Shown here: one piece after another, positions 410 to 53,489 of the stretch
Layout: each line of letters starts with the position of its first letter
Numbering within the stretch: position 1 is the first letter of the stretch
Virus record (IMG/VR): IMGVR_UViG_3300032331_003609
Location: 124,001-188,000 of that record
Strand: one strand, 5' to 3'
Length of the DNA stretch: 64,000 nucleotides
Notes under the pieces: generated by a model
Database searches by the model: none
The model's input: the letters and a program-made list of their open reading frames with translations, nothing else
What the model was told of the DNA's origin: nothing
Program-made: the position numbers and the translations under genes

Positions 410-988
410 ATGGCAGGATTACCACATTTTACTAGTGCAAAAGCGGCAGTAAGCCTTTACGAACCGGTATATTTAAACCAGTTCGAGGTTATTATTCAGC
501 CACCTGCTGCGGTTTCTAACCCAGCTGGTACTGCGGGAAGAACCTTAATGGTAGAGAATGTAACACAGATTGGCGGATTAGCAGTGGATAAAACTCCAGC
601 ACCAGTAATGCAAAACTATAAATTTGCAGGAAGAAGATACGCAGGTGCAGCAGTTGATGATACTGGTGTTAAGATCACAGTTAACTTTCAAACAAATTTA
701 GACGATAATAACTCTAACTATGTCCACAAGACACTTAGACAATGGAGTGATTTAGTTTATAACCCATTAACGGGTGCTATGGGAATTAAATCTAACTATG
801 CTGGCGGAACGTACATTCTAATTAGCATATTTAATAAACAAGGAGATGTTTTTAGAAGAATGAAATTCTTAAATTGCTTTCCGACTAAAGCTATAGATCC
901 TATGCCACTTACATATGACAATGGAGCAAATATGTACACGATTGCTGCTGAATTTAGAGCAGATTATTTTGAAGATGTGTTCAATTAA
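410..988 (+). CDS. gp19: Tail tube protein, T4 gp19-like, paralog 2
   Basis: 192 aa with typical gp19 pattern (N.FEV.I, ...LRQWSDLVYNP, FLNCFP, F..DYFE); lies upstream of baseplate hub genes. Confidence 0.8.
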   Translation: MAGLPHFTSAKAAVSLYEPVYLNQFEVIIQPPAAVSNPAGTAGRTLMVENVTQIGGLAVDKTPAPVMQNYKFAGRRYAGAAVDDTGVKITVNFQTNLDDNNSNYVHKTLRQWSDLVYNPLTGAMGIKSNYAGGTYILISIFNKQGDVFRRMKFLNCFPTKAIDPMPLTYDNGANMYTIAAEFRADYFEDVFN

Positions 989-7513: not shown

Positions 7514-7521
7514 GATATATA
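7514..7521 (+). promoter_or_regulatory. Late promoter GATATATA
   Basis: 23 nt upstream of the 7545 start. Confidence 0.65.
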
Positions 7522-7544
7522 AGGTTTAAGAATATAATAAAAGA

Positions 7545-13853: not shown

Positions 13854-15941
13854 ATGTTCGAAAGCAAATTAAATAGGGGTAAAGCGAATGGATATGCCCC
13901 GCTAGATTCAGAAGGGAAAGTTCCTGCTGATAGAATCCATGCGGGTGCTAGCGGAACATCTGGTGTATCCGGAACTTCAGGTACATCGGGATTGAATGGA
14001 TCACAAGGACTTAATGGTACATCAGGATCTGCAGGAACATCTGGTATATCAGGATCTGCAGGAACATCAGGAAGCGATGGAACTTCCGGTTCTAGCGGCA
14101 TAAATGGCACTAGCGGAACAAATGGCTCAAGCGGAACTTCAGGTTCTTCTGGAACATCAGGTTCTGGATTTGTTTGGAGAGGGGCGTGGCAACCAAGTCC
14201 AACAGTTTATGTAGGCGGTCAAGATGTAGTTTCATATACCGGAGGTTCATACATAAAGATTGGAGACGGTAATTCAGGTAGCGCACCGCCATTTGATTCA
14301 ATTCGTTGGAGCCCAATTGCAGAATCAGGAAGTTCTGGTGATAATGGGACAGATGGTAATGATTCTTCAAATAGCGGTAGATGGATTTATGCTGCCACTA
14401 TTACTCCTGGAAGTGGAAATTTTGGAACAGATGATCCTGTAATGAGTTTAATCGAATATGTCTACATAAATACAGATGAGGTAAACGGGGCAAATTATTC
14501 TACATGGCTTTCCGGAGTAGACAGTATACAGAACCTTGGTTACCCTGTCTATTTACAAATCACACAAGTAGGTTCTAACAATATTATTGGTATCTGGAGA
14601 GTTATATCCATTACTTCAACTGGTGGTGTTTACGAGTTTCAAGTTGATACGCCACTTGTGGCGAATGGTACTATAACTATATCAGATGTTTTTACAATAT
14701 CATGGGTATACAATGGGATAAGTGGTTCTTCAGGTTCAGCAGGAACTTCTGGCACTTCAGGTACGAGCGGTACATCAGGTACTACTGGAACTAGCGGTTC
14801 AAGCGGTTCAGCTGGCACCTCAGGTTCATCTGGTTCTGCTGGAACAAGTGGAACTTCAGGAACTTCTGGCACTTCAGGTACGAGTGGTACTTCCGGTTCT
14901 GCTGGAACTTCAGGTTCGAGTGGATCAGCTGGAACTAGCGGTACTTCGGGTTCTTCTGGATCTGCTGGAACGAGCGGTTCTTCAGGATCGAGTGGTTCAG
15001 CAGGTACAAGCGGTACTTCAGGATCAAGCGGTTCAGCAGGAACTTCAGGTACATCAACCCCCGGGCCACAGAATTATACACAAGTTTTAGGATCCCAAGT
15101 AAATAGTGTTAGCACAACAGGAATAACCATAATTTCAGGATCGATCACGACAACTGGCAATCCGGTCAAGATCCAAGTAACAGGTGATGCAAATCCACAA
15201 TCAGTATCAGGATGGGTGAGACTTCAAATATACAGAGAATCTACCCCTATAGGTAATATAATTCAATGCGAAACAGCAGGAAATAATGTAAATGTTCCTT
15301 ACTGTGTGGATTTTATAGATACCCCTGCAGCGGGTACCTACACATACTCAATGAGAACTGTTAGCGGTATTGCTGGAACATTCCAATTTGGAGAGGTAAA
15401 CGGGCCTACACTAAGTATGACTGAAATGGCGGGGGCAATTGGATCTTCAGGAACTTCCGGAGCTAATGGATTATCAGGTAGTTCTGGATCAAGCGGGGCA
15501 TCAGGAACGTCCGGAGCTAATGGATTGTCTGGTAGTTCTGGATCTTCCGGATCTACTGGAACATCAGGATCTACCGGTGCATCAGGAACATCGGGTACTT
15601 CATTCACCTCTCCATATTCCGGTAATCTAAATGGAACTGCAGGTCAATCCTGGATGTCGTCATTCGGAGCAACAACTTCAATAAACTGGAATAATGGAAA
15701 CGTACAAACACGTACACTTGCTGCTAGTGAGACGTTTACTTTTGCAAATCCACAAAACGGAGCAACTTATATTTTGGTAATAAAACAAGCAGCAGCTGGT
15801 AACTATACGATTACTTGGCCAACTATTAGTTGGATGGGGGGAGCACCTCCAACTATGACAACAACTGCTAATAAAACTGACATTTACACATTTGTATACG
15901 CTAATAGTACATATTTCGGATCTTACGCACAAAACTTCTAA
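13854..15941 (+). CDS. Modular tail fibre with three Gly-Thr/Ser-Ser repeat blocks separating globular domains
   Basis: N-terminal KANGYAPLDSEGKVP fibre motif; GTS/GSS blocks; C-terminal beta domain (GATYILVIKQ...YTITWP...W.GG..P). Confidence 0.8.
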   Translation: MFESKLNRGKANGYAPLDSEGKVPADRIHAGASGTSGVSGTSGTSGLNGSQGLNGTSGSAGTSGISGSAGTSGSDGTSGSSGINGTSGTNGSSGTSGSSGTSGSGFVWRGAWQPSPTVYVGGQDVVSYTGGSYIKIGDGNSGSAPPFDSIRWSPIAESGSSGDNGTDGNDSSNSGRWIYAATITPGSGNFGTDDPVMSLIEYVYINTDEVNGANYSTWLSGVDSIQNLGYPVYLQITQVGSNNIIGIWRVISITSTGGVYEFQVDTPLVANGTITISDVFTISWVYNGISGSSGSAGTSGTSGTSGTSGTTGTSGSSGSAGTSGSSGSAGTSGTSGTSGTSGTSGTSGSAGTSGSSGSAGTSGTSGSSGSAGTSGSSGSSGSAGTSGTSGSSGSAGTSGTSTPGPQNYTQVLGSQVNSVSTTGITIISGSITTTGNPVKIQVTGDANPQSVSGWVRLQIYRESTPIGNIIQCETAGNNVNVPYCVDFIDTPAAGTYTYSMRTVSGIAGTFQFGEVNGPTLSMTEMAGAIGSSGTSGANGLSGSSGSSGASGTSGANGLSGSSGSSGSTGTSGSTGASGTSGTSFTSPYSGNLNGTAGQSWMSSFGATTSINWNNGNVQTRTLAASETFTFANPQNGATYILVIKQAAAGNYTITWPTISWMGGAPPTMTTTANKTDIYTFVYANSTYFGSYAQNF
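14723..15057 (+). repeat. Uninterrupted G-(T/S/A)-(S/T/A) triplet repeat, about 110 aa
   Basis: [17 protein letters not shown]...; synonymous codons vary between units. Confidence 0.9.
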
Positions 15942-17339: not shown

Positions 17340-17408
17340 GATATATAATGGATATACTGACTTTAAACTCTGAATGCTTAAAAAATGGTTTTAGAACATA
17401 GATATATA
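17340..17408 (+). promoter_or_regulatory. Two GATATATA late promoters (17340-17347, 17401-17408)
   Basis: Exact motifs in the 132-bp intergenic region; the second is 21 nt before the 17430 start. Confidence 0.65.
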
Positions 17409-17429
17409 CAATAAAATAAATCCCTCAAA

Positions 17430-19679
17430 ATGGATAGAATTAATTTCGACGATAATCTGTCACAGATAAAAATGGAAAAGGCTAAAGCTGCTGCCACTCT
17501 TTTAAATGAGAGCTGGGGTGGTAACGGAGGTTTTATTCCAGGCGCTGCTGGCTCGTATACAGACGGTTTACAAAAAGAGATAGCTAATATGTCTACAGAA
17601 GACAGAAACCTAGCTAAACCTTCTTTTTCTGTTGGTGTGTTAGAAACAGCAATGGCTTTAAACAATACATCATTCACTGAATTGCCAGAAGCTAAGGTCC
17701 TGGTTGAGAAATACATCAATCATGCAGCGGTTAAAGGAATTTCTGAGGCTTACCTGATTGAATCAATGATCTCTGAATTGGAAAACTTTGCTTGGGAAAA
17801 GAATGTAAAATCTGCATTAAATACCCTAAAGAAAACATTTGAAAGCAATAGAAGAGAAATTGAAGTAGCAAAGGCTATTGAAGAAATTAATAGATCAGCA
17901 GGTAGAGATTTATTTTCTGGTATTGTTGAATCAATGAGAAATTGGTTAGCAGCAGATCAAAGAATTTCAGAAAGTCTTTTAAGAGACCTTAAGAAATGGG
18001 GATTTAACCCAACAGTTAGAAATCTAGTTGAGAAGGTATCTTATTTGGAGAATAACAGCTCAAGCAGATTTAGTATTAAAGTAGCATCTGATACATGCAG
18101 TGTCAGCCCTATTATTGCTCCAAGTTTAGTTACTGAAAGTTCTTCAATATTTGTAACATCTGATAGATTCTTCAGAGCTACAGAAGAAGGAGTATCTGTA
18201 ATGGAAAGAGCAGAAGCTTCAAAACTTCCTGGTAAATTCTTAAATGCAGTTTTAGCACTTTCTAATCCAAATGTTAAAGTTAACGAAAGTGGTTTAGATC
18301 TTTATATAGGTAAAAATAAAATCTCTGTTGTTTTTGAAAGTGAAACAGATACTAAAAATATTTTCTTCAACGGTAAAAGAGTAGCAGAAGATAAATTAGG
18401 ATTCACATTATCTTTTGAATTAAGAAATGGCTTCCAAGGATCTGCTAATGCAATTGAAAATGCAGTTCAAGTAGTAGAAGCTGCTAACTATCTTTCTGAA
18501 ATTGATTTTGGTAAAAAGATCTCTTCTAAAATCTACGAAGGAGTAGAAGCTAACGTATTTAAATTTGGCGAAAAGGTTTACGTTCATAAAGTAAACCCTG
18601 CTATGAGAAAGAACGAGCTTTTAGAAGGAAACGGCAATCAAGCAGTTAATATAGTAAAAGAATTCTTAGGATTTGATCTTTCTGAATCTATGACAGAAGT
18701 TTTAGAAAAAGAAGAAAGAATCTTAGCTATCATGAAGAATGACAAAGAATCTATCAAGAAAAACCTATCTATCGTAGAGAGCGAAATGAACAAGATTGCT
18801 AAAGCACTTGAATCAAATCCTTCTTTACAAAATTCTGATGAAATTAAAGAAGCTCAAGTAATGCTTAGCAATGAGTCTACTGCATTAAAATCTAAATGGA
18901 ATCAAATCTCAGTTGAGATTGAAAGATTCGAAAAAGGAGCTAAGAAGGTATCTAAAATCTCTGAAAACGAAGGATATGGTATTAACACCGATGTTAAAAT
19001 AAACAGAAACGGAGAAAAAGGTAGAGTTGTAGGTGTAAATGGTAATTCTAAAACATACACAGTTATGTTTGAGAATGGAAAAACCGGAGAATTTTTCTTC
19101 AATGATGTAACTGATATCTCAGATGAAATTAACAACATTGAATTACAACCAGTTAATGATTTACAAGAAGAGGAAACAAACGAATCAGCTGAAGCTAACT
19201 TAGCAGAAGCACCGGACACAACTGCAGCAGGATCAGCAAAAGATATTGACGATTTAAATGCTCACAATTTAGCAAATTTAGATGTTAAAGGTGGTAAGAA
19301 ATTAAAAGAAGATCCAAAAGGAACTTCTGGTAAACATGAATTAGCAACTGCTCCTGAGCACACAGCAAAGACAGGAAAGAAATTCGTTCAAAAAGAAAAG
19401 AATGCTAACTTAGCTGATGCACCACATAGCACATCTGCTGGATCAGCAAAAGATATTGAAGATTTAAAAGCTCACAATTTAGCAATTATCGAGTCTCAAA
19501 AGAATGCTAACTACGAAAAAGCACCTTCTGGCAAGAAAGAGAAAGTTAAAAAATTAGTTCTTGGTAAAAAAGGAACTTTGGCTAAAGCACCAGGTAATAG
19601 CAAGCATAACGGTAAAGGTGATCACGAGCCTCTTAATAGAGCAACCCTATCTAAAGCACCGTCTACAAAAAAAAAGTAA
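17430..19679 (+). CDS. Large head-associated protein (prohead core / internal head-like), 749 aa
   Basis: Late promoter; many L/I/V-x-E sites (LLNES, IVES, VTES, ISEN); coiled coil, SH3/KOW-like segment, C-terminal LA.AP repeats; lies in the head module. Confidence 0.7.
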   Translation: MDRINFDDNLSQIKMEKAKAAATLLNESWGGNGGFIPGAAGSYTDGLQKEIANMSTEDRNLAKPSFSVGVLETAMALNNTSFTELPEAKVLVEKYINHAAVKGISEAYLIESMISELENFAWEKNVKSALNTLKKTFESNRREIEVAKAIEEINRSAGRDLFSGIVESMRNWLAADQRISESLLRDLKKWGFNPTVRNLVEKVSYLENNSSSRFSIKVASDTCSVSPIIAPSLVTESSSIFVTSDRFFRATEEGVSVMERAEASKLPGKFLNAVLALSNPNVKVNESGLDLYIGKNKISVVFESETDTKNIFFNGKRVAEDKLGFTLSFELRNGFQGSANAIENAVQVVEAANYLSEIDFGKKISSKIYEGVEANVFKFGEKVYVHKVNPAMRKNELLEGNGNQAVNIVKEFLGFDLSESMTEVLEKEERILAIMKNDKESIKKNLSIVESEMNKIAKALESNPSLQNSDEIKEAQVMLSNESTALKSKWNQISVEIERFEKGAKKVSKISENEGYGINTDVKINRNGEKGRVVGVNGNSKTYTVMFENGKTGEFFFNDVTDISDEINNIELQPVNDLQEEETNESAEANLAEAPDTTAAGSAKDIDDLNAHNLANLDVKGGKKLKEDPKGTSGKHELATAPEHTAKTGKKFVQKEKNANLADAPHSTSAGSAKDIEDLKAHNLAIIESQKNANYEKAPSGKKEKVKKLVLGKKGTLAKAPGNSKHNGKGDHEPLNRATLSKAPSTKKK

Positions 19680-19935: not shown

Positions 19936-20292
19936 ATGGAGTATGTTAAAAACAAAGATCTAAAAAGAGCGATATTAGAATCAAAAGAGAATGGAAAATT
20001 AACCGCAGAAACGGTTAAAATGTTTACTTTAATAGTAAATGGTCTTTCAAAAACAAAATCCTATCGGGATATTGAAGATAAAGAAGATTGCATAGCATTT
20101 GGAATGGAGGATTTAATTAAATATTGGGACAGATTTGATCCAGCTAAATCCGATAATCCATTTGCATTTATTTCACAAATTGCCAAAAACGGAATGCAAA
20201 AAGGTTGGAAAAAAATACATTCAACCAGGTCTATAAAAACCATCCCCTTTTCTAGACTTACAAGGGATGATAATCAAAATTATAATGTCTAA
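19936..20292 (+). CDS. gp55: Late-transcription sigma factor, T4 gp55-like
   Basis: YVKNKDL...LIVNGLS...SY...EDCI..G.E.LIKY...FDP.KSDNPFAFISQIA.NG matches the gp55 pattern (YVNNKEL...LIAEGLS...NFD..K..NPHAYITQ). Confidence 0.85.
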   Translation: MEYVKNKDLKRAILESKENGKLTAETVKMFTLIVNGLSKTKSYRDIEDKEDCIAFGMEDLIKYWDRFDPAKSDNPFAFISQIAKNGMQKGWKKIHSTRSIKTIPFSRLTRDDNQNYNV

Positions 20293-20779
20293 AACCAATA
20301 TAAAAAATGTCAAACCTAATGGCAGATTTAAATCGGGAAAATTCGTACCAAGAAATCCCGAGAAGTATATTGGCGATATTCACAACATAATCTATAGATC
20401 ATCATGGGAAGGGAGATTTTGTATGTATTGCGATCAGAATCCTAGCATCTTAAAATGGGCTTCAGAAGCGGTGCAAATAGAATATTGGAATCCCATTGAT
20501 AAAAAAACCCACATTTACCACCCCGATTATTACATAAAGGTTCAAAAAAGGGATATGTCAACTGAGGATTGGATTATTGAAATAAAACCATCTTCCCAAT
20601 ATCAGTTAGAAAAAAAACCAGTTTTAAAAGAACCGATGACGGAAAAGAGAATTAGATCTCATAACGATCAAATGCAAATATGGATCGTGAACAGAGCTAA
20701 ATTTGATGCTGCAATGAATTTTGCAAAGTTTAATGGATATAAGTTTGGAGCCATAGATGAAAATTTCATTTTTAGATAA
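20267..20779 (+). CDS. gp4: Head completion nuclease, T4 gp4-like (TnsA-type fold)
   Basis: GKF.P.NPEKYIGD...I.YRSSWE..F...CD.NP.ILKWASE; YHPDYY; IEIKP. Confidence 0.9.
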   Translation: MIIKIIMSKTNIKNVKPNGRFKSGKFVPRNPEKYIGDIHNIIYRSSWEGRFCMYCDQNPSILKWASEAVQIEYWNPIDKKTHIYHPDYYIKVQKRDMSTEDWIIEIKPSSQYQLEKKPVLKEPMTEKRIRSHNDQMQIWIVNRAKFDAAMNFAKFNGYKFGAIDENFIFR

Positions 20780-21351
20780 TGGATTTTAAAATAGAAATAA
20801 GAGATGCTATAGAGAAAGCTGGATCCCCTGCAAAATTAGCGGAGGAAAGTTTTTTGAATTATTCAAAGAACTATGCAGTACTTACTAGTTCAGAGTCGCT
20901 TAGGAGTTTAGTTCAGGGAAAGATCTACACATTTTATTATGATTCAGATATTAAGGCAGATAAGGGATTTGTTAATAGAAGACCCGTAGTGTTCTTTGAA
21001 TCAAAAGAGATAACCCCATCAAAAAGCATAATAAAAGGAATAGACATGATCTTGCTAAGTCCAAAAGACAGAAAGAATTTCTTCATCCGATTACATTCTA
21101 TTTATGGTAAAATCATGGATCAGAACGAAAAAAGAGATAGATCTGCGCACATGCCTTTAAGATTTGACCCCTCAGTATTAGAAACTTTAATGGGAGGTAT
21201 CAAGTATAATCATGCATACACCGGATACAAAATGGAAAAAATAAAAGGATTAAAGGAAATAGAAAGAGAGGAGTGGAGATATTTAGTCTATCTAAACACC
21301 AAATCTATTGAGGGGGCTGATTTGAACGATATATACAACAAATATCAATAA
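20779..21351 (+). CDS. gp2: DNA end protector, T4 gp2-like
   Basis: GKIYTFYYD...RPVV...G..M..L.PK.R pattern; synteny gp4-gp2-portal. Confidence 0.65.
   Translation: MDFKIEIRDAIEKAGSPAKLAEESFLNYSKNYAVLTSSESLRSLVQGKIYTFYYDSDIKADKGFVNRRPVVFFESKEITPSKSIIKGIDMILLSPKDRKNFFIRLHSIYGKIMDQNEKRDRSAHMPLRFDPSVLETLMGGIKYNHAYTGYKMEKIKGLKEIEREEWRYLVYLNTKSIEGADLNDIYNKYQ
21328..21335 (+). promoter_or_regulatory. Late promoter GATATATA inside the gp2 3' end
   Basis: 15 nt before the portal-1 ATG. Confidence 0.55.
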
Positions 21352-22943
21352 TGGCAGGATTTTTAGGAGATAATAGGAGCAATCCATTTTTTAGTAACGT
21401 TCTAAATAACCTTAGAAAAATAGGTTCTTTTGGAATGAGCTATGGTGACATGGTTGTTAAAAACTCCCAAGCGGTAGGTACTACCGAGGCAATGTTCTTA
21501 AAACAGGGCGGAATTCAGGATGAAAATTTCTTATATGCTTTAAGAAAGGCAGATACCACAGCTAAACAATACATAGCTTATTTTGATAGGGATTACATCA
21601 ATAAGAAAACATATCTTAGAAGCTTTGCACTTAATCCTGAAATAGAATTTATTTTAGATACCGTTTGCGACGAAGCTATTGTATATGATGATAAAAACTT
21701 CTTTTCATATTTTGTATCAACAGATATCAAGGGTATTGGCGAAGAGATGGAACAGCAAATACAAGACAGATATAAAGAAATTTATAGCTTATTTGGCTTT
21801 AATGAAGGAATCTCTGCATGGCACTTTTTTAGGAACTTTTTAATTGATGGGATATTAGCATTTGAAATCATATTTGACTCGAGGGGAAAGAATATTATAG
21901 GATTTAAAGAATTAGATCCTGCATCCTTATTGCCTTCCGTCGAAAAACAACTTGACGGTAATTTCGTAGAATGCTGGATTCAATACCCAGACAATCCCTC
22001 TTTATCTAGAAAATTGTACGATTCACAGATTATTTATATTTCATACGCTAAGGGAAATACAACAACAAGAGTAAGTTATGTAGAAAGATTGATTAGATCT
22101 TTTAATCTATTAAGAATTATGGAGCATACCAGAGTAATTTGGAATGTTATGAATTCATCATATAGAATGACAATGACTGTTCCAGTAGGAACAAAATCCC
22201 CGCAAAAAGCAAAACAATCATTAGCTGAGCTGATGAGCATCTATAAAGAAGATATTAGTCTTAATCAAGATAGCGGTGAGCTTTTTGTGAACGGAAAACC
22301 AAACATTCAGTTCTTTAAAAATTATCTGATGCCGTCTACTCCCAACGGAACACCTGATATAACACCATTAGCAGGAAGCGGAGATGCAACACCTTTTAGC
22401 GATTTAAAAGCTTTAGCATATTTTGCAGATAAGCTTAAATTAGATTCTAAAATTCCATATTCAAGATTTGATAGAGAGGATAGAGGTACACAGGGTACAT
22501 TCAGTGGTAACGCAGAAGGATTAGATCAAGAAGAGATAAGATTCTTTAAATTCATTACAAGATTAAGATCCATCTATCAAGATATACTTCTAAAACCTTT
22601 ATGGATACAATTTTGCTTGGATCATCCAGAGCATAAAAGGGATTTTATGGTTAAGAGCCAATTCGGTTTAGATTATGTTAAAGATAATTCTTTTGCTGAA
22701 ATAAAATATATGGAGATCCTCAATGCAAGAAAAGATCAAGTAACTAAAATTGCAGGTCTTTTAGATGCTGACGGAACACCGTATTTCTCGTTGAATTATG
22801 TACTAGACAAGTATCTTGGAATGACCGATGATGATAAGATAGCTAACGAGAAAGCAAAAGAGGCAGCAGAGAAGAAGAAAAAAGAGAAGGAGAAAGAAGC
22901 AGGAGAAGCAGGAGAAGCACCAGAAGGAGAATTTAAACTTTAA
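21351..22943 (+). CDS. gp20: Portal vertex protein, T4 gp20-like, paralog A
   Basis: PEIEFILD..CDEAIVYD, FR..LIDG.L.F, ELDP, SY.ERLIRSFNLLRIME...VIW, KA.Q....LM..YK, EEIRFFKFI.RLR. Confidence 0.9.
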   Translation: MAGFLGDNRSNPFFSNVLNNLRKIGSFGMSYGDMVVKNSQAVGTTEAMFLKQGGIQDENFLYALRKADTTAKQYIAYFDRDYINKKTYLRSFALNPEIEFILDTVCDEAIVYDDKNFFSYFVSTDIKGIGEEMEQQIQDRYKEIYSLFGFNEGISAWHFFRNFLIDGILAFEIIFDSRGKNIIGFKELDPASLLPSVEKQLDGNFVECWIQYPDNPSLSRKLYDSQIIYISYAKGNTTTRVSYVERLIRSFNLLRIMEHTRVIWNVMNSSYRMTMTVPVGTKSPQKAKQSLAELMSIYKEDISLNQDSGELFVNGKPNIQFFKNYLMPSTPNGTPDITPLAGSGDATPFSDLKALAYFADKLKLDSKIPYSRFDREDRGTQGTFSGNAEGLDQEEIRFFKFITRLRSIYQDILLKPLWIQFCLDHPEHKRDFMVKSQFGLDYVKDNSFAEIKYMEILNARKDQVTKIAGLLDADGTPYFSLNYVLDKYLGMTDDDKIANEKAKEAAEKKKKEKEKEAGEAGEAPEGEFKL

Positions 22944-22946
22944 TAA

Positions 22947-24680
22947 ATGGCAGGATTCATTGACAATTTTTCACAGAGTAACCCAAACATGGGGCGTATA
23001 CTCAAAGCCGTAAGTAAAATCGGAAGCTTCGGAATGGAGTATAAAGATCTTGTTGTGAAAAATTCTCAAGCAATTGGGGTTTCAGAAGCAATGATGAGAC
23101 AAAAATTAGCATTAACAGATTCTGATGAGGATTTTATTTTTAGCCTTGCAGCTGCAGATACCACTAGTAGAAAATACATTGCTTATTTTGATAAAGATTA
23201 TCCATACAAAAGAGATTTTTTAAGAAGCTTTGCACTTAATGCCGAGATAGAATGGATTTTAGACATCCTTGCTGATGAAGCTATAGTTTATGATGACAGA
23301 AATTTTTGCTGCAGTCTATCACTGGTTAATATGGATCTAAAGGATGAAATAGCAGACTCATTGAGGGAGAACTTTAGAAAGATCTATGTCTCCCATGGAT
23401 TTAACAACGGAATTTCAGCTTGGCAGTATTTTAGACAATTTTTAATAGATGGATTTTTATCTTTTGAAATAGTTTATTCAGATGATGGAAAACAAATAGT
23501 AGGATTTAAAGAATTAGATCCAGTTTCATTGACCCCATCTGTAGAGAGAAACCCTGGAGGACAAACTGTTCAAATATGGTATCAGTACTATGGAGACAGT
23601 GTTAGAGAAAGAAAGCTATATGATGCTCAGGTCATATATGTTTCTTTTGCAAATGGTAATGGCACAAGCAGAACAAGTTATGCTGAAAGATTAATTAGAT
23701 CCCATAATCTTCTAAAGATAATGGAGCATACCAGAATCATTTGGAATGTTATGAATGCTTCTTTCCGATTGAAGATGACTATCCCGGTTGGTTCTAGATC
23801 TCCTCAAAAAGCAAAAGAGACATTAGGGGAATTGATGAACATGTATAAGGAGGATATTAAACTTAATACTGATTCCGGAGAATTAAGTATTAACGGACGT
23901 CCAAATTTACAATTTTATAAGAACTATCTTTTCCCTGTCCAAGGAGGAGAATCACCTAAAATAGAGACTATTAATAATGCAGGGCCAAACTTAAATGTTA
24001 TAGATGCTGTGGTTTATTTCTTCAATAAATTAAAAGCAGATTCTAAGATACCATTTAATAGATTCGCTGCTAGATCTGGTGGAACCGTAGGAACATATAA
24101 GATAGGAGCAGAATCTGCAGAAAGGGATGAAATCAGATATAATAAATTCATTAATAGAATTAGATCAATCTATCAAGAGATCATACTAAAACCATTATGG
24201 ATTCAGATGACTTTGGATTATCCTGAACTTGATAAGGATTCTATATTTAGATCCCAATTAGGGCTTAAATTTAACTCCGATAATCAGTTTGGTGAATCTA
24301 AAGAGATAGAACAACTAATTAAGAAAATAGATTTTATAGCAGGACTTTCTGAAATTAAAGAAAAGAAAGGCGAAGAAGAACTTCCTTATTTTAGCCAGGA
24401 TTTTCTTATAGATAAATTTTTAGGATTGACCAACGAAGATAGAAGGGTTAATAATATTTACAAGAAAAAGGAGGAGGAGGAAGGCAAAGCAGCAGCTGCA
24501 ATTTCAGGATCTGCTACACCAGCACCAGCAGGTGGAGGTGACACAGCAACTCCAGCAGCAGAAACTGGAGGCGATGAAGCAGCACCAGCAGCTGAAGCCC
24601 CTGCGGAAGAAGCACCAGCAGCAGAAGCCACACCAGCACCAGCACCAGCAGCAGCAGCAACAGAGACTGAAGCACCTTAA
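22947..24680 (+). CDS. gp20: Portal vertex protein, T4 gp20-like, paralog B with Ala/Pro/Glu-rich tail
   Basis: Same motifs as paralog A along the full length (RDEIRYNKFI.RIR); C-terminal PAAEAPAEEAPAAEA tail. Confidence 0.9.
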   Translation: MAGFIDNFSQSNPNMGRILKAVSKIGSFGMEYKDLVVKNSQAIGVSEAMMRQKLALTDSDEDFIFSLAAADTTSRKYIAYFDKDYPYKRDFLRSFALNAEIEWILDILADEAIVYDDRNFCCSLSLVNMDLKDEIADSLRENFRKIYVSHGFNNGISAWQYFRQFLIDGFLSFEIVYSDDGKQIVGFKELDPVSLTPSVERNPGGQTVQIWYQYYGDSVRERKLYDAQVIYVSFANGNGTSRTSYAERLIRSHNLLKIMEHTRIIWNVMNASFRLKMTIPVGSRSPQKAKETLGELMNMYKEDIKLNTDSGELSINGRPNLQFYKNYLFPVQGGESPKIETINNAGPNLNVIDAVVYFFNKLKADSKIPFNRFAARSGGTVGTYKIGAESAERDEIRYNKFINRIRSIYQEIILKPLWIQMTLDYPELDKDSIFRSQLGLKFNSDNQFGESKEIEQLIKKIDFIAGLSEIKEKKGEEELPYFSQDFLIDKFLGLTNEDRRVNNIYKKKEEEEGKAAAAISGSATPAPAGGGDTATPAAETGGDEAAPAAEAPAEEAPAAEATPAPAPAAAATETEAP

Positions 24681-27002: not shown

Positions 27003-27473
27003 ATGAGAAGTAAAATAGTAATTGTTGGCAGAGGAGGTTCGGGTAAAGATTTTCTGAGAAAAAAATTCGAATCAAGAGGATTTAAATACTGTGTTTCGTG
27101 TACAAGCAGACCTATTAGGGAAAACGAAGAAGATGGAAAGGATTATAGATTTACAGACGTTCAATTTTTTGAGAATAACTTTCTTAAGTTCTATGAGATT
27201 GATGAGTTCAATGAATGGAAGTACGGAACTTTGATAGAGGATTTTGAGAATTCAAATTTATTTATTATGACCCCAAGAGGGGTTAATCACATAAAACCAG
27301 AAGACAGAGCAAATTGCTTTGTTATATTTATAGATCCGGATAAACAAACAATAAAGAAAAGACTTCTTGAAAGAAGAGACGCAGATTCAGCTGACAGAAG
27401 AATAGAAGCTGATGACAAGGATTTTTTCGAATTTTCCAACTATGATATGAGGGTAACAAATCACGATTTTTAA
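27003..27473 (+). CDS. gmk: Guanylate kinase
   Basis: GRGGSGKD, TSRPIRENEEDGKDY.F, YGT. Confidence 0.9.
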   Translation: MRSKIVIVGRGGSGKDFLRKKFESRGFKYCVSCTSRPIRENEEDGKDYRFTDVQFFENNFLKFYEIDEFNEWKYGTLIEDFENSNLFIMTPRGVNHIKPEDRANCFVIFIDPDKQTIKKRLLERRDADSADRRIEADDKDFFEFSNYDMRVTNHDF

Positions 27474-29021: not shown

Positions 29022-29029
29022 GATATATA
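29022..29029 (+). promoter_or_regulatory. Late promoter GATATATA
   Basis: 19 nt before the 29049 start. Confidence 0.65.
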
Positions 29030-29048
29030 AGTAAAGTATCAACCAGAA

Positions 29049-30539: not shown

Positions 30540-31459
30540 GCATTAAAAAATTAAACGAGCAATTTGCTCAGACATTTAGCGGTGATGGATTTAATAGCTC
30601 TAATGGGGTTTTTAAAGTTAAGTATAAGGCTTTTGATGATTTATCAAAAGCTAAAGGAAGAGAAATAAATCCTTATGACCATATTAAAGGTGAAGAGTAT
30701 CAAATAGGTGATATAGTTTTAGCAAGGCTAAGTGGAAATAGCAAAAAGAAGAGGATAAAAGCTGAAGTTATATCATCAATAAGAACTGATGATGGTAAAG
30801 GAACTGAATTTAAAATCAGAAGTTTAGTATCAAAAAAGATTTACACTGTTCCTTCGTATGCCCTTGATTTTTATGAGGACAGAGGACATAGGGGCGGAAG
30901 TCATTCCGGAGCTAGTACTATTAGCAATAAAGAAAAATTCCTAAACTCGTTGAAATACAATAATGGTAATTTTATTTGGGGATCTTTAGAATCTAAAAAT
31001 AATAATATGAGAACTGATATGCTATTAAAAGAAGGTGATTCTGTTTCGGAAAGACCTAGCATCATAGATCCTTCTATAAATGTTGTACTAATAGATACCA
31101 ATCATCCGGACTATAATCTTCATATAGAGAATTTTAAAAAGCTTGGAGGTATTTACACTATCCCAGAGAATAAAAGTATTTATATACACAAAGAAGATCC
31201 TAATTTTTCTAAATTCAATGATAACCATTTAACTGTTATAGAAGCAGTAGAAATTGCAAAGATGCTATCTAAAGAATCATCTGTTGACGAAAAATATAGT
31301 GACGTCCTTGCTGCTCAAATTCTAAGAAACAAAGGACACAAGGATGCATATAAGATTATAGCTTCCAATTTTTTAAAGAAGCATGGAATTTCTTACGGGG
31401 AGGCAGTTGACGAATTAGCGCCCTCTATGAAAAACCATCTACCAGAAAAAGAAATGTAA
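30536..31459 (+). CDS. Hypothetical protein with SH3/KOW-like segment
   Basis: YQIGDIVLA...KAEVI...FKI; N-terminal IKKLNE. Confidence 0.7.
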   Translation: MSIKKLNEQFAQTFSGDGFNSSNGVFKVKYKAFDDLSKAKGREINPYDHIKGEEYQIGDIVLARLSGNSKKKRIKAEVISSIRTDDGKGTEFKIRSLVSKKIYTVPSYALDFYEDRGHRGGSHSGASTISNKEKFLNSLKYNNGNFIWGSLESKNNNMRTDMLLKEGDSVSERPSIIDPSINVVLIDTNHPDYNLHIENFKKLGGIYTIPENKSIYIHKEDPNFSKFNDNHLTVIEAVEIAKMLSKESSVDEKYSDVLAAQILRNKGHKDAYKIIASNFLKKHGISYGEAVDELAPSMKNHLPEKEM

Positions 31460-32163
31460 TGTCCATTGATAGAATAAGAAGAATACCATTCCCAGAAAAT
31501 ATAACTAATAATAATTCTCTCACTATTGATTCAGAAAAATTTAAAAACAGAGATATCGGGGAGTACAGTAAATTTGTCAATAAGCATTCTAATGAATCAT
31601 TTATAGTTTGTGCATGTGGCGTTTCTCTAAACGATTATGACAATTTTGATAACCACATAACTATTGGGGTAAATGATGCAGGTAAGAAAGTCTGGTGTAA
31701 ATATCTGGTTGTAGTTAACGAGCCAAGCACCTTTAAATTTAAAAGATGGCCAGACGTTCAAAGTAATAACTCAGAATTTGTTTTTACCCACATGAAAACT
31801 TTACCTATTGATAATCCGGAAGGAAGAATAATAAAGGTAAATCTCGGAAAATATGAAGGCGTAGATCTAGACAATTATGGATTTATAGATTACACTACCA
31901 ATTCACCATATATGGCTATAGTTATAGCATATCAAATGGGAGCTAGAAAAATAGCATTGGTTGGAGTCGATTTTACAATGAATCACTTCTTTGGTGAAAC
32001 AGGAAAACACCAGATAATGAGAGAAATAGAGAGGGTGAAGGAACAATATTCGGTTCTTGGAAAAGCATTAACGGAAAAAGGTATTAAAATAGCAAACCTG
32101 TCAAAAGACAGTCTTATTGAGTCGTGGCCCAAAATGACACTGCAAGAATTCGAAACTATATAG
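31459..32163 (+). CDS. GT29/Maf-type (DUF115-like) Rossmann sugar-transferase-like protein
   Basis: IVCACGVSL, TIGVND, TNSPYMAI.IAYQMGARKIALVGVDF. Confidence 0.7.
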   Translation: MSIDRIRRIPFPENITNNNSLTIDSEKFKNRDIGEYSKFVNKHSNESFIVCACGVSLNDYDNFDNHITIGVNDAGKKVWCKYLVVVNEPSTFKFKRWPDVQSNNSEFVFTHMKTLPIDNPEGRIIKVNLGKYEGVDLDNYGFIDYTTNSPYMAIVIAYQMGARKIALVGVDFTMNHFFGETGKHQIMREIERVKEQYSVLGKALTEKGIKIANLSKDSLIESWPKMTLQEFETI

Positions 32164-37844: not shown

Positions 37845-37852
37845 GATATATA
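37845..37852 (+). promoter_or_regulatory. Late promoter GATATATA of the protease-capsid operon
   Basis: 19 nt before ATG 37872. Confidence 0.7.
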
Positions 37853-37871
37853 GTAAAATAAATAAAATAGA

Positions 37872-39953
37872 ATGAGTCTTAACCCTGAATTCGTTTTGGT
37901 CTTGGAAAAATCTTCACATAACCTGAAGTCCGAGAAGAATGGTAACGAATATTATCTTGAAGGTATAGCAGCAGTGTTTGGTAAAGAGAATTCAAACCAA
38001 AGAATCTACGAGGAAAGAGAATATCTTCCCCATTTGCAATATTTAAAAGAAAAGATAGAACAAAAAAGATTAGTAGGTGAATTAGATCACCCTAAGGAAT
38101 TTGATGTGTCTTTAAAGAATATTTCACACCTAGTTGAAGAGCTTGCTTATGATCAAGAGAATAGAACTTTAAGAATTAAAGTTAGACTTTTAGATACACC
38201 AGCAGGTAAAATAGCTAAATCTTTAGTTGATGCTGGTATTCCAGTTTCTATCTCATCAAGAGCAGCAGGCAACGTGATGGAAAACAAAAAAGTACAAATT
38301 AAGAAGATTTTTACCTATGATCTAGTTGCTGATCCTGGATTTGAGAATGCTCAATTAGAAAGAGTTTACGAAAGCTATGGATACAATCTTAACGAAAAGT
38401 CAAAAAATGAATCCATTTTAAATGGTCTTCCTTTGATGAACGAAAGCTTAGGATTAGAAAATGATTCAAATTTTAAGATATATAGAATCAAAGATCAAGA
38501 TAAGATACAAAAGCTTCTAGATAAGGAGCCAAATAAGAGTTTAATCATGGAAAATAATTTCGTTACAGCGGAAGAAATGAATGGATATTCTAAACTAATC
38601 AAAAAAGAAATGGACACTATTAAAGGGTCTATTGAATCATTGAAAGGGATTAAAGAATCTTCCAAAATAACAGAATCATCTTCTCTTGAGGAAAGAGTTG
38701 GTAAGTTAGAAAAGTATGCTGATTATTTAGCAGAAAACCTAGAGGCATCTATTAAGTATGGTGAATACCTAGCTGAAAATTTAGAAGATTCAGTTTCTTA
38801 TTCTAAGTATCTTGCAGAGAACCTAGACAAATCTATTTCTTATGCAAAATATCTTGCTGAGCATTTAGATCACAATATCTCTTATTCTGAGTACATTGCA
38901 GAGAACGTTGACAACAACGTAACAGCAGTTAAAGGTCTAACAGAGAAAGTTGATCAATCTATTGCTTATGCAGAATATGTAGCAGAGAACGTAGACAAGA
39001 ACATTAAGTATAGCGAATACCTTGCTGAAAACTTAGATAAGAACATCTCTTATTCTGAGTATCTTGCTGAGAACGTAGATAAGAACATTTCTTATTCTGA
39101 GTACTTAGCAGAAAACCTAGATAAAGGTTTAGCTTATAGCGAATACTTAGCTGAGAAATTAGATAAGAACATTTCTTATTCTGAGTACTTAGCAGAAAAC
39201 CTAGATAAAGGTTTAGCTTATTCTGATTATCTTGGTGAGAACCTAGATAAGACAGTTCATTACAGTGAGTATATCGCTGAAAAATTAGCTAACAACATCA
39301 GCTATGCAGAATACATCGCTGAGTCTGTAAATGCAGCTTCAGGAACCGCAGAGGTAAAAGAAGCAGTAACAAAAGCAATTTCTGAAAACACAAGAACTTC
39401 AGGATATGCAGGAGATTACACAGAGATCTCTTCTAAAATTGACAATTTATTGAACACTGTCGGTAAACAAAAGACAGAAGAAATAGCAGAAAATAAGAAC
39501 TATCCTTTCTTAAAGCTTATGGGCGAACAAGGACAAAGAGAATTTTTATCACTGCACGAAGGCCAAAAACAAAAGGTCGCCAAATCCTTAAACGAAAACA
39601 ATTACTCATCCGAAAAAGAGGTAGTTGAAATTATGGGTAAAACTCTGAATGAGCAAAATCAATCCGGAGAAAAATTCCTAGATTTAATGCCAGAAAAATA
39701 CAAAACTACATGGGAGAATATGAATGAGTCTCAAAAGGCCTCTATATTAGCTCAAAGTAAGTTTCATAAATTGGATACTCCTTACCAAATCCAGAATTTC
39801 TGGGCTACAAGAGGTATTGCAGTTACCAAGGCAAATATCGAAAGAATAGACGAATCCCAAGAACAAATAACCGCAGCTCCTCAGCCAAAGGGAATATCTA
39901 GAGAATATTTAGATAATCTTTCTGAAGCTTTAGCTGTTAGGTTTAAAAAATAA
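37872..39953 (+). CDS. gp21: Prohead protease (gp21, U9 family) fused to gp22-like scaffold
   Basis: LEGIA...N.N.RIY, GELDHP, NISH, LDTPAGKIAK.L, ISSRA.G, TYDLVADPGF; then about 500 aa helical scaffold directly before gp23. Confidence 0.93.
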   Translation: MSLNPEFVLVLEKSSHNLKSEKNGNEYYLEGIAAVFGKENSNQRIYEEREYLPHLQYLKEKIEQKRLVGELDHPKEFDVSLKNISHLVEELAYDQENRTLRIKVRLLDTPAGKIAKSLVDAGIPVSISSRAAGNVMENKKVQIKKIFTYDLVADPGFENAQLERVYESYGYNLNEKSKNESILNGLPLMNESLGLENDSNFKIYRIKDQDKIQKLLDKEPNKSLIMENNFVTAEEMNGYSKLIKKEMDTIKGSIESLKGIKESSKITESSSLEERVGKLEKYADYLAENLEASIKYGEYLAENLEDSVSYSKYLAENLDKSISYAKYLAEHLDHNISYSEYIAENVDNNVTAVKGLTEKVDQSIAYAEYVAENVDKNIKYSEYLAENLDKNISYSEYLAENVDKNISYSEYLAENLDKGLAYSEYLAEKLDKNISYSEYLAENLDKGLAYSDYLGENLDKTVHYSEYIAEKLANNISYAEYIAESVNAASGTAEVKEAVTKAISENTRTSGYAGDYTEISSKIDNLLNTVGKQKTEEIAENKNYPFLKLMGEQGQREFLSLHEGQKQKVAKSLNENNYSSEKEVVEIMGKTLNEQNQSGEKFLDLMPEKYKTTWENMNESQKASILAQSKFHKLDTPYQIQNFWATRGIAVTKANIERIDESQEQITAAPQPKGISREYLDNLSEALAVRFKK
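38712..39341 (+). repeat. 15 tandem 42-bp (14-aa) repeats, consensus SYSEYLAENLDKNI
   Basis: Counted in translation from KYADYLAENLEASI to SYAEYIAESVNAAS; unit 6 is degenerate. Confidence 0.92.
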
Positions 39954-39968
39954 ACATTTTTATAGAAA

Positions 39969-41726
39969 ATGCAACTTATCAATCAACATGAAATCTATGA
40001 AACCTGGGCACCAATATTGGAAAGCAAAACAGGTATTCAAGAGAGAGGTAAATTAGACTGGTTAACTAAATACTGTCATTACCACTCATTAAACGAATCT
40101 GCCGGAGCGTATAACTCTTTAGGCGTATTAAACGGTATGGGCCAAGTATCTCCTGCTTCTAACGTAGGTTTATCTGGCGGTCCTGCTGGCTTTTATGCAG
40201 GCGGATCTTATTCTGGAACTGGTCTTGGTTCTGGCGATAAATTCCCTTCTCTTTTACCTTTAGCTATTCAAGTAGCTGCTAAAACAGTAGGTTTTGATAT
40301 CGTTCCAGTTATCCCAATGAGCGGTCCTACAGGCGTATTATCATACTTAGACTATGTTTACGCAGGTGGTAAATTATCTGGTACTGACTCTGTATCTCCA
40401 TACACAGCAAACACTCCAGATTTAATTAAAGTTCCAACAACAACAGCTTCTCCAGTTACTGGTTTAGCAGTAGGAACCACTTACCTTTTAGGTGCTTCTG
40501 GTCTTTCTTCAACAAAAGACTTAGACTCTGCAGGTGTAGGTGCTTTAGTAGCTGGTAAATTCGTCGGTAGTTCAAGAATCGATGGTTTCCCAATTTTCCA
40601 AGTGGTAGCATTAACTGTAGGTTTCTCTATTGCTGACGCAATCGGGGCAGACGCAGTTATTTACTCTGGTTCATATAATACAGGTACAAAGGTTTATACA
40701 ATCTCTGCAACAGTAGGATATGCAAACGGTGCTGCTCAATTAGTTAAAACTTTAGAAGATCACGTACAAGGATTTACTGGTTCTGGCGTTGCTAACGACG
40801 GTACATGGTCTGGTCCTTATGTAGACGGTACTAAAGCTTACGATCCAATGTCAAGAGGAACTGCAGAAGGCACTTACTTCAAGTCATTAGGTCTTTCTAC
40901 ATTCACTAAGTTTGTAGAGGCTGGTACATTCCAAGTTGCTGCTTCTGTTACAACTGAGCAAATCCAAGATTTGAACAAGCAATTCGGTATCGACGTAGTT
41001 TCTATGATCGAGAACGCACTTGTTAACGAGGTTTCTCAAGCGATCAACAAGCACATCTTATCTAGAGCATTTGCTTTAGGTTGGTCTAACCACTATGAAT
41101 TTGCAAACACCGAATTAGGTGGAGCATCTTCTGCTTCTCTAAACATCAATTTAAATATTGGTTCTGGTGGAGCTTCAACCGCATCTTTCATCGGTAAGGA
41201 CAATGGATCTTTAACAATCTATACTCCTGGCGATATTGCTACAGGCGGATACGAGAACCAATCAACTGTACAAAGAAGATTATTCTCAAGAATCTTGGCT
41301 GCTGCTAACGTAGTAGCAAACAGAGGAAGAAGAGGACCTGCTAACTTTATTGTTACTAACGCTCAGGTAGCTTCTGCTTTACAAGATATTTCACAATTCA
41401 CATTTGCTCCTTTTACAAACACGTTAACTCAAAATAACGGTACTTTATATCCAGTTGGTTCAATCGCTGGTATGACCGTTTATGTTGATCAAAACATGTC
41501 TTTTGGCGATACGAGAGTATTAGTTGGAAGAAAAGGTGCTGATGACGAACCAGGTATGAAATTTATGCCTTACATGATGGCTGAGTCAATTCAGACTATC
41601 TCTGAAGGTACAATGTCACCTAAAATTGCAGTTAAGTCTAGATACTCTTTAGTAGAGGCTGGACATCATCCTCAAACAATGTACTTATGCTTCAAAGCTA
41701 TAGTACCTGCAACTGGTATCGCTTAG
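39969..41726 (+). CDS. gp23: Major capsid protein, T4 gp23-like
   Basis: W.PIL, VGFDIVPV.PMSGPTG, Q.AA..T.EQIQDL...GID...., NF.V...VAS.L, G...G..VYVD, G.KF.PY, SRY.L; strong codon bias. Confidence 0.96.
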   Translation: MQLINQHEIYETWAPILESKTGIQERGKLDWLTKYCHYHSLNESAGAYNSLGVLNGMGQVSPASNVGLSGGPAGFYAGGSYSGTGLGSGDKFPSLLPLAIQVAAKTVGFDIVPVIPMSGPTGVLSYLDYVYAGGKLSGTDSVSPYTANTPDLIKVPTTTASPVTGLAVGTTYLLGASGLSSTKDLDSAGVGALVAGKFVGSSRIDGFPIFQVVALTVGFSIADAIGADAVIYSGSYNTGTKVYTISATVGYANGAAQLVKTLEDHVQGFTGSGVANDGTWSGPYVDGTKAYDPMSRGTAEGTYFKSLGLSTFTKFVEAGTFQVAASVTTEQIQDLNKQFGIDVVSMIENALVNEVSQAINKHILSRAFALGWSNHYEFANTELGGASSASLNINLNIGSGGASTASFIGKDNGSLTIYTPGDIATGGYENQSTVQRRLFSRILAAANVVANRGRRGPANFIVTNAQVASALQDISQFTFAPFTNTLTQNNGTLYPVGSIAGMTVYVDQNMSFGDTRVLVGRKGADDEPGMKFMPYMMAESIQTISEGTMSPKIAVKSRYSLVEAGHHPQTMYLCFKAIVPATGIA

Positions 41727-41804: not shown

Positions 41805-41812
41805 GATATATA
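41805..41812 (+). promoter_or_regulatory. Late promoter GATATATA
   Basis: 16 nt before ATG 41829. Confidence 0.7.
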
Positions 41813-41828
41813 AAGAAAAAGTTTACAT

Positions 41829-53463: not shown

Positions 53464-53471
53464 GATATATA
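53464..53471 (+). promoter_or_regulatory. Late promoter GATATATA at the head of the glycosylation operon
   Basis: 18 nt before ATG 53490; downstream genes overlap or abut through 62530. Confidence 0.65.
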
Positions 53472-53489
53472 AAAAGCGTAACCCATAGA

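Follow-up and report, generated by a model that had tools for sequence, protein, structure and literature searches.

A conserved tandem pair of portal genes in a clade of uncultured freshwater jumbo phages

Introduction

Tailed phages and herpesviruses package their DNA through the portal, their most conserved machine, which is taken to be a homo-dodecamer encoded by a single gene. Why, then, would a phage carry two? This question was raised by a 64,000-nucleotide stretch of DNA (hereafter the window), positions 124,001 to 188,000 of the IMG/VR record IMGVR_UViG_3300032331_003609. A first-pass annotation, made from the sequence alone, reported two full-length, divergent portal genes in tandem, the second with an Ala/Pro/Glu tail of ~60 amino acids. 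It proposed that retaining both implies a heteromeric ring, a second specialised vertex, or alternative packaging and ejection portals. We asked whether the pair is real, whether it is conserved, and which of these readings the evidence favors. The reported observation was correct, and its interpretation was partly supported: both copies appear to be retained for a reason, but the choice among the three mechanisms rests on circumstantial evidence.

Results

Two complete portal genes lie side by side

The window belongs to an uncultured freshwater jumbo phage, a 245-kb record with T4-like head genes and Bacteroidota-style translation signals. The features of the locus, in window coordinates, are as follows.

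19936..20292 (+), gp55-like late sigma factor, the first gene of the tightly packed run that ends with portal B; it overlaps the next gene
20267..20779 (+), gp4-like head-closure (head completion) protein
20779..21351 (+), gp2-like DNA end protector, whose stop overlaps the start of portal A (TAATG)
21328..21336 (+), GATATATAC, a promoter-like element 23 nt upstream of the ATG of portal A
21351..22943 (+), portal paralogue A (530 aa), the upstream or first copy
22329..22397 (+), A residues 327-349, the clip tip and channel-facing loops
22836..22940 (+), C-terminal tail of A (residues 496-530), Lys/Glu-rich and ending in EFKL
22941..22949 (+), junction TAA TAA ATG, a double stop followed directly by the start codon of B
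22947..24680 (+), portal paralogue B (577 aa), the downstream or second copy
24492..24677 (+), C-terminal tail of B (residues 516-577), an Ala/Pro/Glu/Thr/Gly low-complexity repeat with no terminal motif

A and B are 51% identical and 70% similar over 534 aligned residues (E = 0). Both match Pfam Portal_T4 (PF07230) almost end to end, A with 223.7 bits (E = 5e-66, profile positions 7-429 of 433) and B with 214.8 bits (E = 2.5e-63, positions 9-426), against a curated gathering cut-off of 22.9. Both also match PHROG 213 'portal protein' and, in phmmer searches of PDB chains (3ja7, 6uzc and 9lu6), the solved T4 gp20, with E = 2.7e-18 for A and 2e-17 for B. We predicted monomer structures with AF2 from 33-sequence alignments, but the models were of low confidence (pLDDT 52.7 and 53.7), too poor for interface analysis. 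Their secondary-structure order fits gp20, and all top-50 Foldseek PDB hits were portal proteins with T4 gp20 first (E = 9e-16 and 2.5e-19), albeit with TM-scores of only 0.3-0.4.

The surrounding genes place the pair in a head-morphogenesis module. The three upstream genes match PHROG 234 'late sigma transcription factor' (E = 6.5e-16), PHROG 218 'head closure' (E = 4e-42) and PHROG 429 (E = 3.5e-6), and the genes for the major capsid protein (MCP; gp23-type) and the protease/scaffold (gp21-type; window 37872-39953) lie 13-15 kb downstream. Tenacibaculum phage PTm1 has the same order of end protector then portal, and a homologue of the head-closure gene also flanks the single portal of a related contig, L037.

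Because the two ORFs are in the same frame, we considered whether they are a read-through fusion or contain a recoded stop, as related huge phages such as Lak recode TAG. Here the stop is a double TAA, a detail absent from the first-pass annotation, and the genome uses all three stops normally. In relatives a stop is always present between the copies, the spacer is 2-9 nt and the relative frame varies. To exclude an assembly artefact, we searched other samples; contigs from other samples and years span the junction, including a 1,250-nt contig from an independent 2017 freshwater metagenome with 2 mismatches.

The pair arose by one ancient duplication and both copies are constrained

We found 66 distinct tandem pairs in related viral contigs, always in the order A then B, and no copy was lost wherever there was room to see it. 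In phylogenies, first copies formed one clade (SH-aLRT 99) and second copies another (97), with mirrored topologies that include the deep lineages (contigs L175 and L184-L190) and clade supports of 97-100. This indicates one ancient duplication and rules out recent or repeated events. Single-portal relatives formed sister and outgroup lineages, but when we tried to date the duplication relative to the single-portal clade, the three-way split of first copies, second copies and singles could not be resolved (AU p = 0.42-0.48).

Absence of a copy from close relatives and relaxed selection had both been named in advance as grounds for rejecting a functional pair, and we found neither. Both copies are under strong purifying selection, with dN/dS of about 0.014 for A and 0.019 for B. 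Their per-domain entropy profiles are the same, with stem helix alpha5 and the clip most conserved in both (Spearman 0.57). Against this, one 5-kb contig (L157) has an in-frame TAG in the first copy. That both copies are retained for a reason is nonetheless well supported.

A single promoter-like element precedes the pair

The window element is a copy of a conserved motif, GATATATA, which is shared with virion genes. Genome-wide, 21 of 46 GATATATA copies lie 15-40 nt upstream of a same-strand start codon, against 0.65 expected. The element is conserved upstream of the first copy in 26 of 29 lineages and upstream of the second in 0 of 29. Together with the short spacer, this makes the pair look bicistronic, although co-transcription is inferred here from motif positions and gene spacing. 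On the third ground named in advance for rejection, an unexpressed copy, the only metatranscriptome holding this phage gave one 255-nt contig in A and nothing solid in B, data too thin to show transcription of B, and DNA carry-over cannot be excluded. A scan for sigma-70 promoters and terminators and for the T4 late-promoter word TATAAATA returned matches at chance level, and a hairpin after B was not significant (z = -1.4).

Other head genes are single-copy

To determine whether the whole head module had been duplicated, we searched the genome for its other components. It has one MCP, one protease/scaffold and one terminase (found by the Terminase_6N model; Terminase_6C found nothing), and no portal of another family was found. 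We also examined 1,516 deposited phage records with a gp20-type portal, none of which has two full copies. Searches of the open-access literature for two, duplicated, paralogous or hetero-oligomeric portals found no phage precedent; phage G has one portal.

The copies differ in putative ring-contact elements and in their tails

The post-duplication stems are short (0.27 and 0.22), and only 5 sites, all conservative, are diagnostic across the whole clade. The crown group has 46 fixed differences, enriched in the clip, tunnel loop, second wing segment and crown. Eleven type-II sites lie in the clip, concentrated at A residues 327-349, the densest cluster of fixed A-versus-B differences, which in the crown group includes a 2-aa insertion. 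This stretch corresponds approximately to the T4 gp20 inner clip loop and channel loop, as judged from the phmmer alignment and PMC4493910. This placement rests on an alignment of roughly 20-25% identity and may be off by several residues.

The tail of B is real, as first annotated: 62 aa, with 42% Ala, 16% Pro, 13% Glu, 11% Thr and 10% Gly and a net charge of -10, encoded by imperfect 15/30/33-nt tandem repeats at 24516-24676. It is predicted to be disordered (pLDDT below 30), and its length varies among relatives more than 96% identical. A also has a tail, which the first-pass annotation had not noted, of 35 aa with a conserved EFKL carboxy-terminus. The hydrophobic-x-Leu terminus is kept in the first copy in 57 of 62 pairs, in the first copy only in 54 of 62 and in at least one copy in 59 of 62. 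It is also kept in single-portal relatives and, in similar form, in more distant huge phages, and in the deep lineages both copies still carry it.

Discussion

Our analysis shows that this lineage duplicated its gp20-type portal gene once, long ago, and has since kept both copies side by side in a fixed order under strong purifying selection, with a single promoter-like element in front of A and B starting a few bases after the stop of A. What the two proteins do is inferred, as are the expression of B, the presence of both proteins in virions, their stoichiometry and any contact between them. Because the two proteins are presumably made together, each keeps every portal domain under the same constraint, and the phage has only one MCP, one protease/scaffold and one terminase, we suggest that both are most likely subunits of the single portal vertex. 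They would probably co-assemble into a mixed dodecamer, of which the simplest form is an alternating A6B6 ring. We hold this reading tentatively, with a probability of about 0.45.

Divergence was gradual and symmetric, the pattern expected when a homomeric ring drifts into an obligate heteromer and not that of abrupt neofunctionalisation. In the window's subgroup the fixed differences lie in the clip tip, the channel and tunnel loops and the crown, which in T4 gp20 contact neighboring subunits, the DNA, the terminase and the neck; the clip beta-sheet, tunnel loops and salt bridges form the inter-subunit contacts (PMC4493910). As the same regions also bind terminase, neck and DNA, however, divergence there fits two separate rings with different partners equally well, and there is no direct evidence that A and B touch each other or that both are in virions. 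In this view the interior-facing tails then split roles. A would keep the ancestral acidic tail with its hydrophobic-x-Leu carboxy-terminus, which may be a docking motif for an internal partner such as the scaffold or core, whereas B would have replaced it with a variable, negatively charged, disordered tail. We also considered that an A6B6 ring directly matches a six-fold neck, but this idea was weakened because in T4 the 12-to-6 step lies between gp13 and gp14, below the portal.

The strongest alternative, which we consider unlikely but do not exclude, is that A and B form two separate homo-dodecamers with different jobs. One would be the true portal at the unique vertex, and the other would sit elsewhere or act at another time: stacked inside the head as an anchor for core or DNA, at a second specialised vertex, or with the two as separate packaging and ejection portals. 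Both copies keep all portal domains and could each form a ring, the differences in the clip tip and channel loops could reflect different external partners, and the distinct tails point to different interior contacts. However, no duplicated partner set was found in the genome, the short post-duplication branches and few clade-wide diagnostic sites indicate no early burst of specialisation, and both copies of the deep lineages share the same C-terminal motif. No tailed phage is known to have two portal vertices, and nothing we found speaks for a second vertex or for separate packaging and ejection portals.

Less likely still, one copy might be a portal-derived assembly factor and not a virion component: a template or chaperone that nucleates or limits ring formation, a regulator of portal incorporation, or a decoy for host defenses that sense portal proteins. 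Co-expression with the portal would suit such a factor, T4 needs a dedicated chaperone, gp40, for portal assembly (PMC4493910), and the loss of the ancestral C-terminal motif in B of the crown group could mark loss of an interior contact. But the clip, stem, tunnel loop and wing are constrained just as strongly in both copies, which is unexpected for a protein that never binds capsid, terminase, neck or DNA, and dN/dS values are equally low. We infer that a decoy resembling the portal would add to, not reduce, detection by portal-sensing immunity.

It is also improbable that the copies are redundant, dosage-related or conditionally alternative, with either protein alone building a working portal and both kept for yield or for different hosts or conditions. 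Both do look fully competent, and jumbo-phage genomes hold other tandem paralogue pairs. Yet a capsid needs only 12 portal subunits, redundant copies should be lost in some lineages but none of the 66 distinct pairs shows loss over more than one substitution per site, and a single promoter-like element with a 2-9-nt spacer argues against differential regulation. Finally, an artefact or decay product (an assembly duplication, a fusion or recoded stop, or a pseudogene) is refuted by the double TAA, the varying spacer and frame, the independent contigs spanning the junction, the 51% identity, which is not that of an assembly repeat, and the purifying selection on both copies.

A deep, species-rich clade that has kept two diverged portal genes as what appears to be one expression unit challenges the one-gene rule. 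If this clade builds an obligate A6B6 portal, a possibility we rate slightly below the main reading, it would be the first tailed-virus portal that is not a homo-oligomer, with intrinsic six-fold alternation in its clip, channel loops and interior tails. The pair also makes testable a long-standing structural question, how a 12-fold ring copes with 5-fold capsid, 5-fold motor and 6-fold tail partners, as a ring with two alternating subunit types would show which contacts can be split between subunits. The case is a clean natural example of how a homomeric viral machine may gain complexity by duplication. Practically, counting portal genes as single-copy markers, as in g20 surveys or viral genome completeness and binning, would over-count these phages.

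Comparison with known systems

A conceptual precedent for different DNA entry and exit openings is Mimivirus, with its distinct exit and packaging portals (PMC2430901), but it is an unrelated virus with unrelated proteins, and its openings are not portal-protein paralogues. Homomeric rings that became obligate hetero-oligomers after duplication, such as V-ATPase proteolipid rings, CCT and proteasome rings, match the evolutionary pattern seen here, with one duplication, both copies retained everywhere, slow symmetric divergence and no early burst of change; this analogy concerns mode of evolution only.

The closest sequence relatives, 34-51% identical, are single-portal huge phages: the clade of contigs L037 and L176-L183, LR756500, LR756501/4, Lak phages, and contigs L193-L195 binned into MAGs. 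They share the MAGF N-terminus, a disordered tail with a hydrophobic carboxy-terminus, and the gp2-like gene upstream. They have one portal gene, in genomes or contigs up to 735 kb, and a second portal is therefore not a requirement of large capsids.

The reference for the family is T4 gp20 (PF07230; PDB 3JA7, 6UZC, 9MKB), with the same domain order of N-terminal segment, wing, stem, clip, tunnel loop and crown. T4 and every other deposited phage record examined with this family have one portal gene that builds a homo-dodecamer, whereas here two paralogues about 51% identical are kept as a unit, both with long disordered C-terminal tails that T4 gp20 lacks. The nearest phage precedent for structural sub-functionalisation by duplication is T4 gp23/gp24 (the gp24 vertex is described in PMC4493910), in which a virion structural gene was duplicated and both copies were retained for non-equivalent positions in one particle. 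That case concerns the capsid shell, with hexamers versus pentameric vertices, and not the portal ring, while in the present genome the MCP is single-copy and it is the portal gene that is paired.

Two adjacent, full-length portal genes in an uncultured jumbo phage

A first-pass annotation of the window had proposed that it carries two complete but divergent T4 gp20-type portal genes in tandem, the second with an additional Ala/Pro/Glu-rich tail. We found that this observation was correct, with both open reading frames lying exactly where they had been placed:

21351-22943, + strand: portal A, 530 aa
22947-24680, + strand: portal B, 577 aa

The two proteins align end to end at 51% identity and 70% similarity. 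Each matches Pfam Portal_T4 (PF07230) over nearly the whole profile (E = 5e-66 for A and 2.5e-63 for B), and each also matches PHROG 213 'portal protein' and the solved T4 gp20 chains (E about 1e-18). AF2 monomer models of the two proteins were of low confidence (pLDDT about 53); their secondary-structure order fits gp20, and every one of the top 50 Foldseek PDB hits for both is a portal protein, with T4 gp20 first. The extra tail of B is 62 aa long (Ala 42%, Pro 16%, Glu 13%, Thr 11%, Gly 10%), has a net charge of -10, and is encoded by imperfect 15/30/33-nt repeats.

Because the two ORFs share a frame in the window, and because related huge phages recode stop codons (Lak has 6 in-frame TAG), we asked whether A and B might be read through as a single protein. 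The junction reads TAA TAA ATG, and the genome uses all three stops (TAA 180, TAG 53, TGA 32) with 94% coding density under the standard code. In relatives a stop is always present between the copies, the spacer is 2-9 nt, and the frame of B relative to A changes. A read-through fusion is thus excluded. An independent 2017 freshwater metagenome also contains a 1,250-nt contig spanning the junction with 2 mismatches, and the phage recurs in freshwater metagenomes from 2016 to 2025.

Genomic context

The window corresponds to bases 124001-188000 of a 244,850-bp linear IMG/VR record estimated to be 86% complete. The portal pair closes a tightly packed run of late genes, comprising a gp55-like late sigma factor, a gp4-like head-closure protein, a gp2-like DNA end protector, portal A and portal B, and is followed by a DNA ligase and a clamp loader. 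Our searches of the genome identified one terminase, no portal of another family, and a single copy of each of two further head genes:

37872-39953 (window): gp21-type protease/scaffold gene
39969-41726 (window): gp23-type MCP gene

Only 5% of the 265 ORFs in the genome have a Shine-Dalgarno core upstream, below the 12% background, a pattern typical of Bacteroidota and their phages that fits a Bacteroidota host. One two-portal relative (contig L191) is binned in a Saprospirales MAG and a single-portal one (contig L195) in a Flavobacteriaceae MAG, which provides only a weak hint of the host. There are no tRNA genes in the window. Auxiliary genes at window 48174-49661 (-), 31459-32163 and 27003-27473 include a RimK-like 'ribosomal protein S6 glutaminyl transferase' homologue, a sialyltransferase-like protein and a guanylate kinase.

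The genome also holds several other tandem paralogue pairs (genome 81123-86602, 69827-76086 and 123828-124988 (window 410-988); window 13854-15941). These are collagen-like tail-fibre genes (60% identical, with a third member in the window that explains the local GC of 0.43), two radical-SAM proteins (36%), a 470-480-aa pair (31%) and a 190/192-aa pair (52%), together with a five-member nucleotide-sugar epimerase-like family.

A single ancient duplication with both copies retained

To determine how widely the pair is conserved, we scanned IMG/VR with A, B, an alignment, and the portal protein of the single-portal contig L037. These scans yielded 66 distinct tandem pairs, always in the order A then B, and no contig of the clade lacks a copy where there is room to see it. 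The 7 single-portal loci with enough room all belong to outgroup lineages. One 5-kb relative contig (L157:2515-2525) has an in-frame TAG inside the first copy (within NYLMP-stop-STNGTP), which could reflect a sequencing error, a defective variant or local suppression; it is the only interrupted copy seen among the pairs catalogued.

In maximum-likelihood trees, all first copies form one clade (SH-aLRT 99) and all second copies another (97), including those of the deep two-portal lineages L175 and L184-L190, from contigs of 22-373 kb, and the two topologies mirror each other. There was therefore one ancient duplication, followed by co-divergence through more than one substitution per site. A clade of single-portal huge phages (L037 and L176-L183, including a 482-kb contig) forms a three-way split with the two copy types that AU tests could not resolve (p = 0.42-0.48), so that this clade either predates the duplication or lost a copy early. 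More distant relatives, including LR756500, LR756501/4, Lak, and contigs up to 607 kb, have one full portal, indicating that the second copy is not a requirement of large capsids. The 735-kb huge phage LR756501.1 (L092) has, in addition, a 101-aa ORF (15166-15351) far from its full-length portal that matches only the C-terminal end of the portal profile (positions 374-431) and may be a remnant of another portal copy. Among 1,516 deposited phage records with a gp20-type match, none has two full-length copies.

We next asked whether either copy shows relaxed selection, which, like its absence from close relatives, had been named beforehand as an outcome that would refute the proposal. For orthologue pairs with unsaturated dS, median dN/dS is 0.014 for A and 0.019 for B. 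Per-domain sequence entropy is nearly the same in first and second copies, respectively: 0.27 and 0.27 bits in stem helix alpha5, 0.51 and 0.68 in the clip, 0.84 and 0.91 in the first wing segment, and 1.35 and 1.14 in the crown, with per-site entropies that correlate (Spearman 0.57). Neither copy has a relaxed domain, and each therefore behaves as a protein that still has to fit capsid, channel, terminase and neck.

A promoter-like element precedes the first copy only

A GATATATA(A/C/G/T) element is a genuine positional signal in this genome. Of its 46 genome copies, 21 lie 15-40 nt upstream of a same-strand start codon, against 0.65 expected; copies occur at window 21328-21336, 7514-7522, 17401-17409, 29022-29030, 37845-37853, 41805-41813, 53464-53472 and elsewhere. 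Among the genes that GATATATA precedes are portal A, the protease/scaffold gene, and a 749-aa ORF (window 17430-19679) with no PHROG match, which carries internal direct repeats in its C-terminal third (…AGSAKDI[DE]DL.AHNLA…) and a basic tail and may be an internal head or virion protein. The element resembles the T4 late promoter TATAAATA, although the exact T4 word is not itself enriched, and the genome encodes a gp55-like sigma factor; that the element is a late promoter is an inference. It is conserved 20-30 nt upstream of the first portal copy in 26 of 29 lineages, even though it lies inside the preceding gene, and is absent upstream of the second copy in all 29. Together with the 2-9-nt spacer, this suggests a bicistronic, probably translationally coupled unit, as inferred from sequence alone; the one metatranscriptome with this phage gave a 255-nt contig in A and nothing solid in B.

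Divergence between the two copies

Across the whole two-portal clade, only 5 sites are diagnostic, all of them conservative changes, and the post-duplication stems are short (0.27 and 0.22), so there was no early burst of change. In the window's crown group, 46 sites are fixed differently in A and B. None of these lies in stem helix alpha5. They are enriched in the clip (11 sites, mostly A residues 327-349, with a 2-aa insertion in A), the tunnel loop, the second wing segment and the crown, and several change charge, for example Asp336 in A against Lys338 in B, and Asp441 against Lys441. By a manual tally of the outgroup columns, B keeps the outgroup residue at roughly 22 of these sites and A at roughly 8. 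Based on the alignment to T4 gp20, which is approximate at about 20-25% identity, the clip cluster corresponds to the inner clip loop and channel loop. In T4 the ring is held together by the clip beta-sheet (one strand from one subunit, two from its neighbour), by tunnel-loop contacts and by salt bridges, and the clip also binds the terminase and neck (PMC4493910).

The C-terminal tails differ as well. A disordered tail ending in a hydrophobic-x-Leu/Phe carboxy-terminus looks ancestral, as the single-portal clade has it (…FKL, …FEL, …FNL) and more distant huge phages end in similar hydrophobic termini (…NFDF, …MGF). Of 62 pairs with both ends visible, 54 keep the motif only in the first copy, 3 in both (deep lineages), 2 only in the second (L175 and L191), and 3 in neither. 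The replacement of the motif in B by Ala/Pro/Glu repeats is therefore a later sub-functionalisation within the window's subgroup. In T4 the crown and C-terminus face the capsid interior (PMC4493910), and we infer that the motif may dock an internal partner such as the scaffold or core. Tail length varies even among relatives more than 96% identical, and a few two-portal lineages have replaced both tails: L113 and L158 carry long Ser/Thr-rich tails with no hydrophobic terminus in both copies, whereas L161 and L163 end in …GDMGTI or …GDMGEI, which resembles the …MGF ends of distant single-portal contigs. The tails evolve fast and repeatedly.

A possible mixed portal ring

Our analysis establishes that there was one ancient duplication, that both copies are universally retained in fixed order under strong and equal constraint, that the pair has a single promoter-like element, and that the other head genes are single-copy. 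From these findings we infer, tentatively and with a probability of about 0.45, that both proteins are subunits of the one portal vertex and co-assemble into a mixed dodecamer, the simplest form of which would be A6B6; expression of B, its presence in virions and contact between A and B are all part of this inference. Slow symmetric divergence is what a homomeric ring drifting into an obligate heteromer would produce, and co-translation from one message would supply similar amounts of each protein.

The first-pass annotation had suggested a heteromeric ring, a second specialised vertex, or alternative packaging and ejection portals, and this interpretation is only partly supported. We found nothing that favours a second vertex or separate packaging and ejection portals, although in the absence of particle data these cannot be excluded. 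More broadly, two separate rings with different roles or places are possible but unlikely. It is less likely still that one copy acts as a non-virion assembly factor, and doubtful that the copies are redundant or conditionally alternative. An artefact is all but ruled out.

Comparison with known portals

The idea that an A6B6 ring would match six-fold tail symmetry is attractive but speculative, as in T4 the 12-to-6 step lies between the gp13 dodecamer and the gp14 hexamer, below the portal (PMC12929587). The conserved two-gene arrangement is not known from any deposited phage record that we searched or from the literature searched. The two proteins are themselves ordinary members of a well-known family, and what sets this clade apart from those records is that it keeps two such genes side by side; a heteromeric portal, if confirmed, would be a first for tailed viruses.
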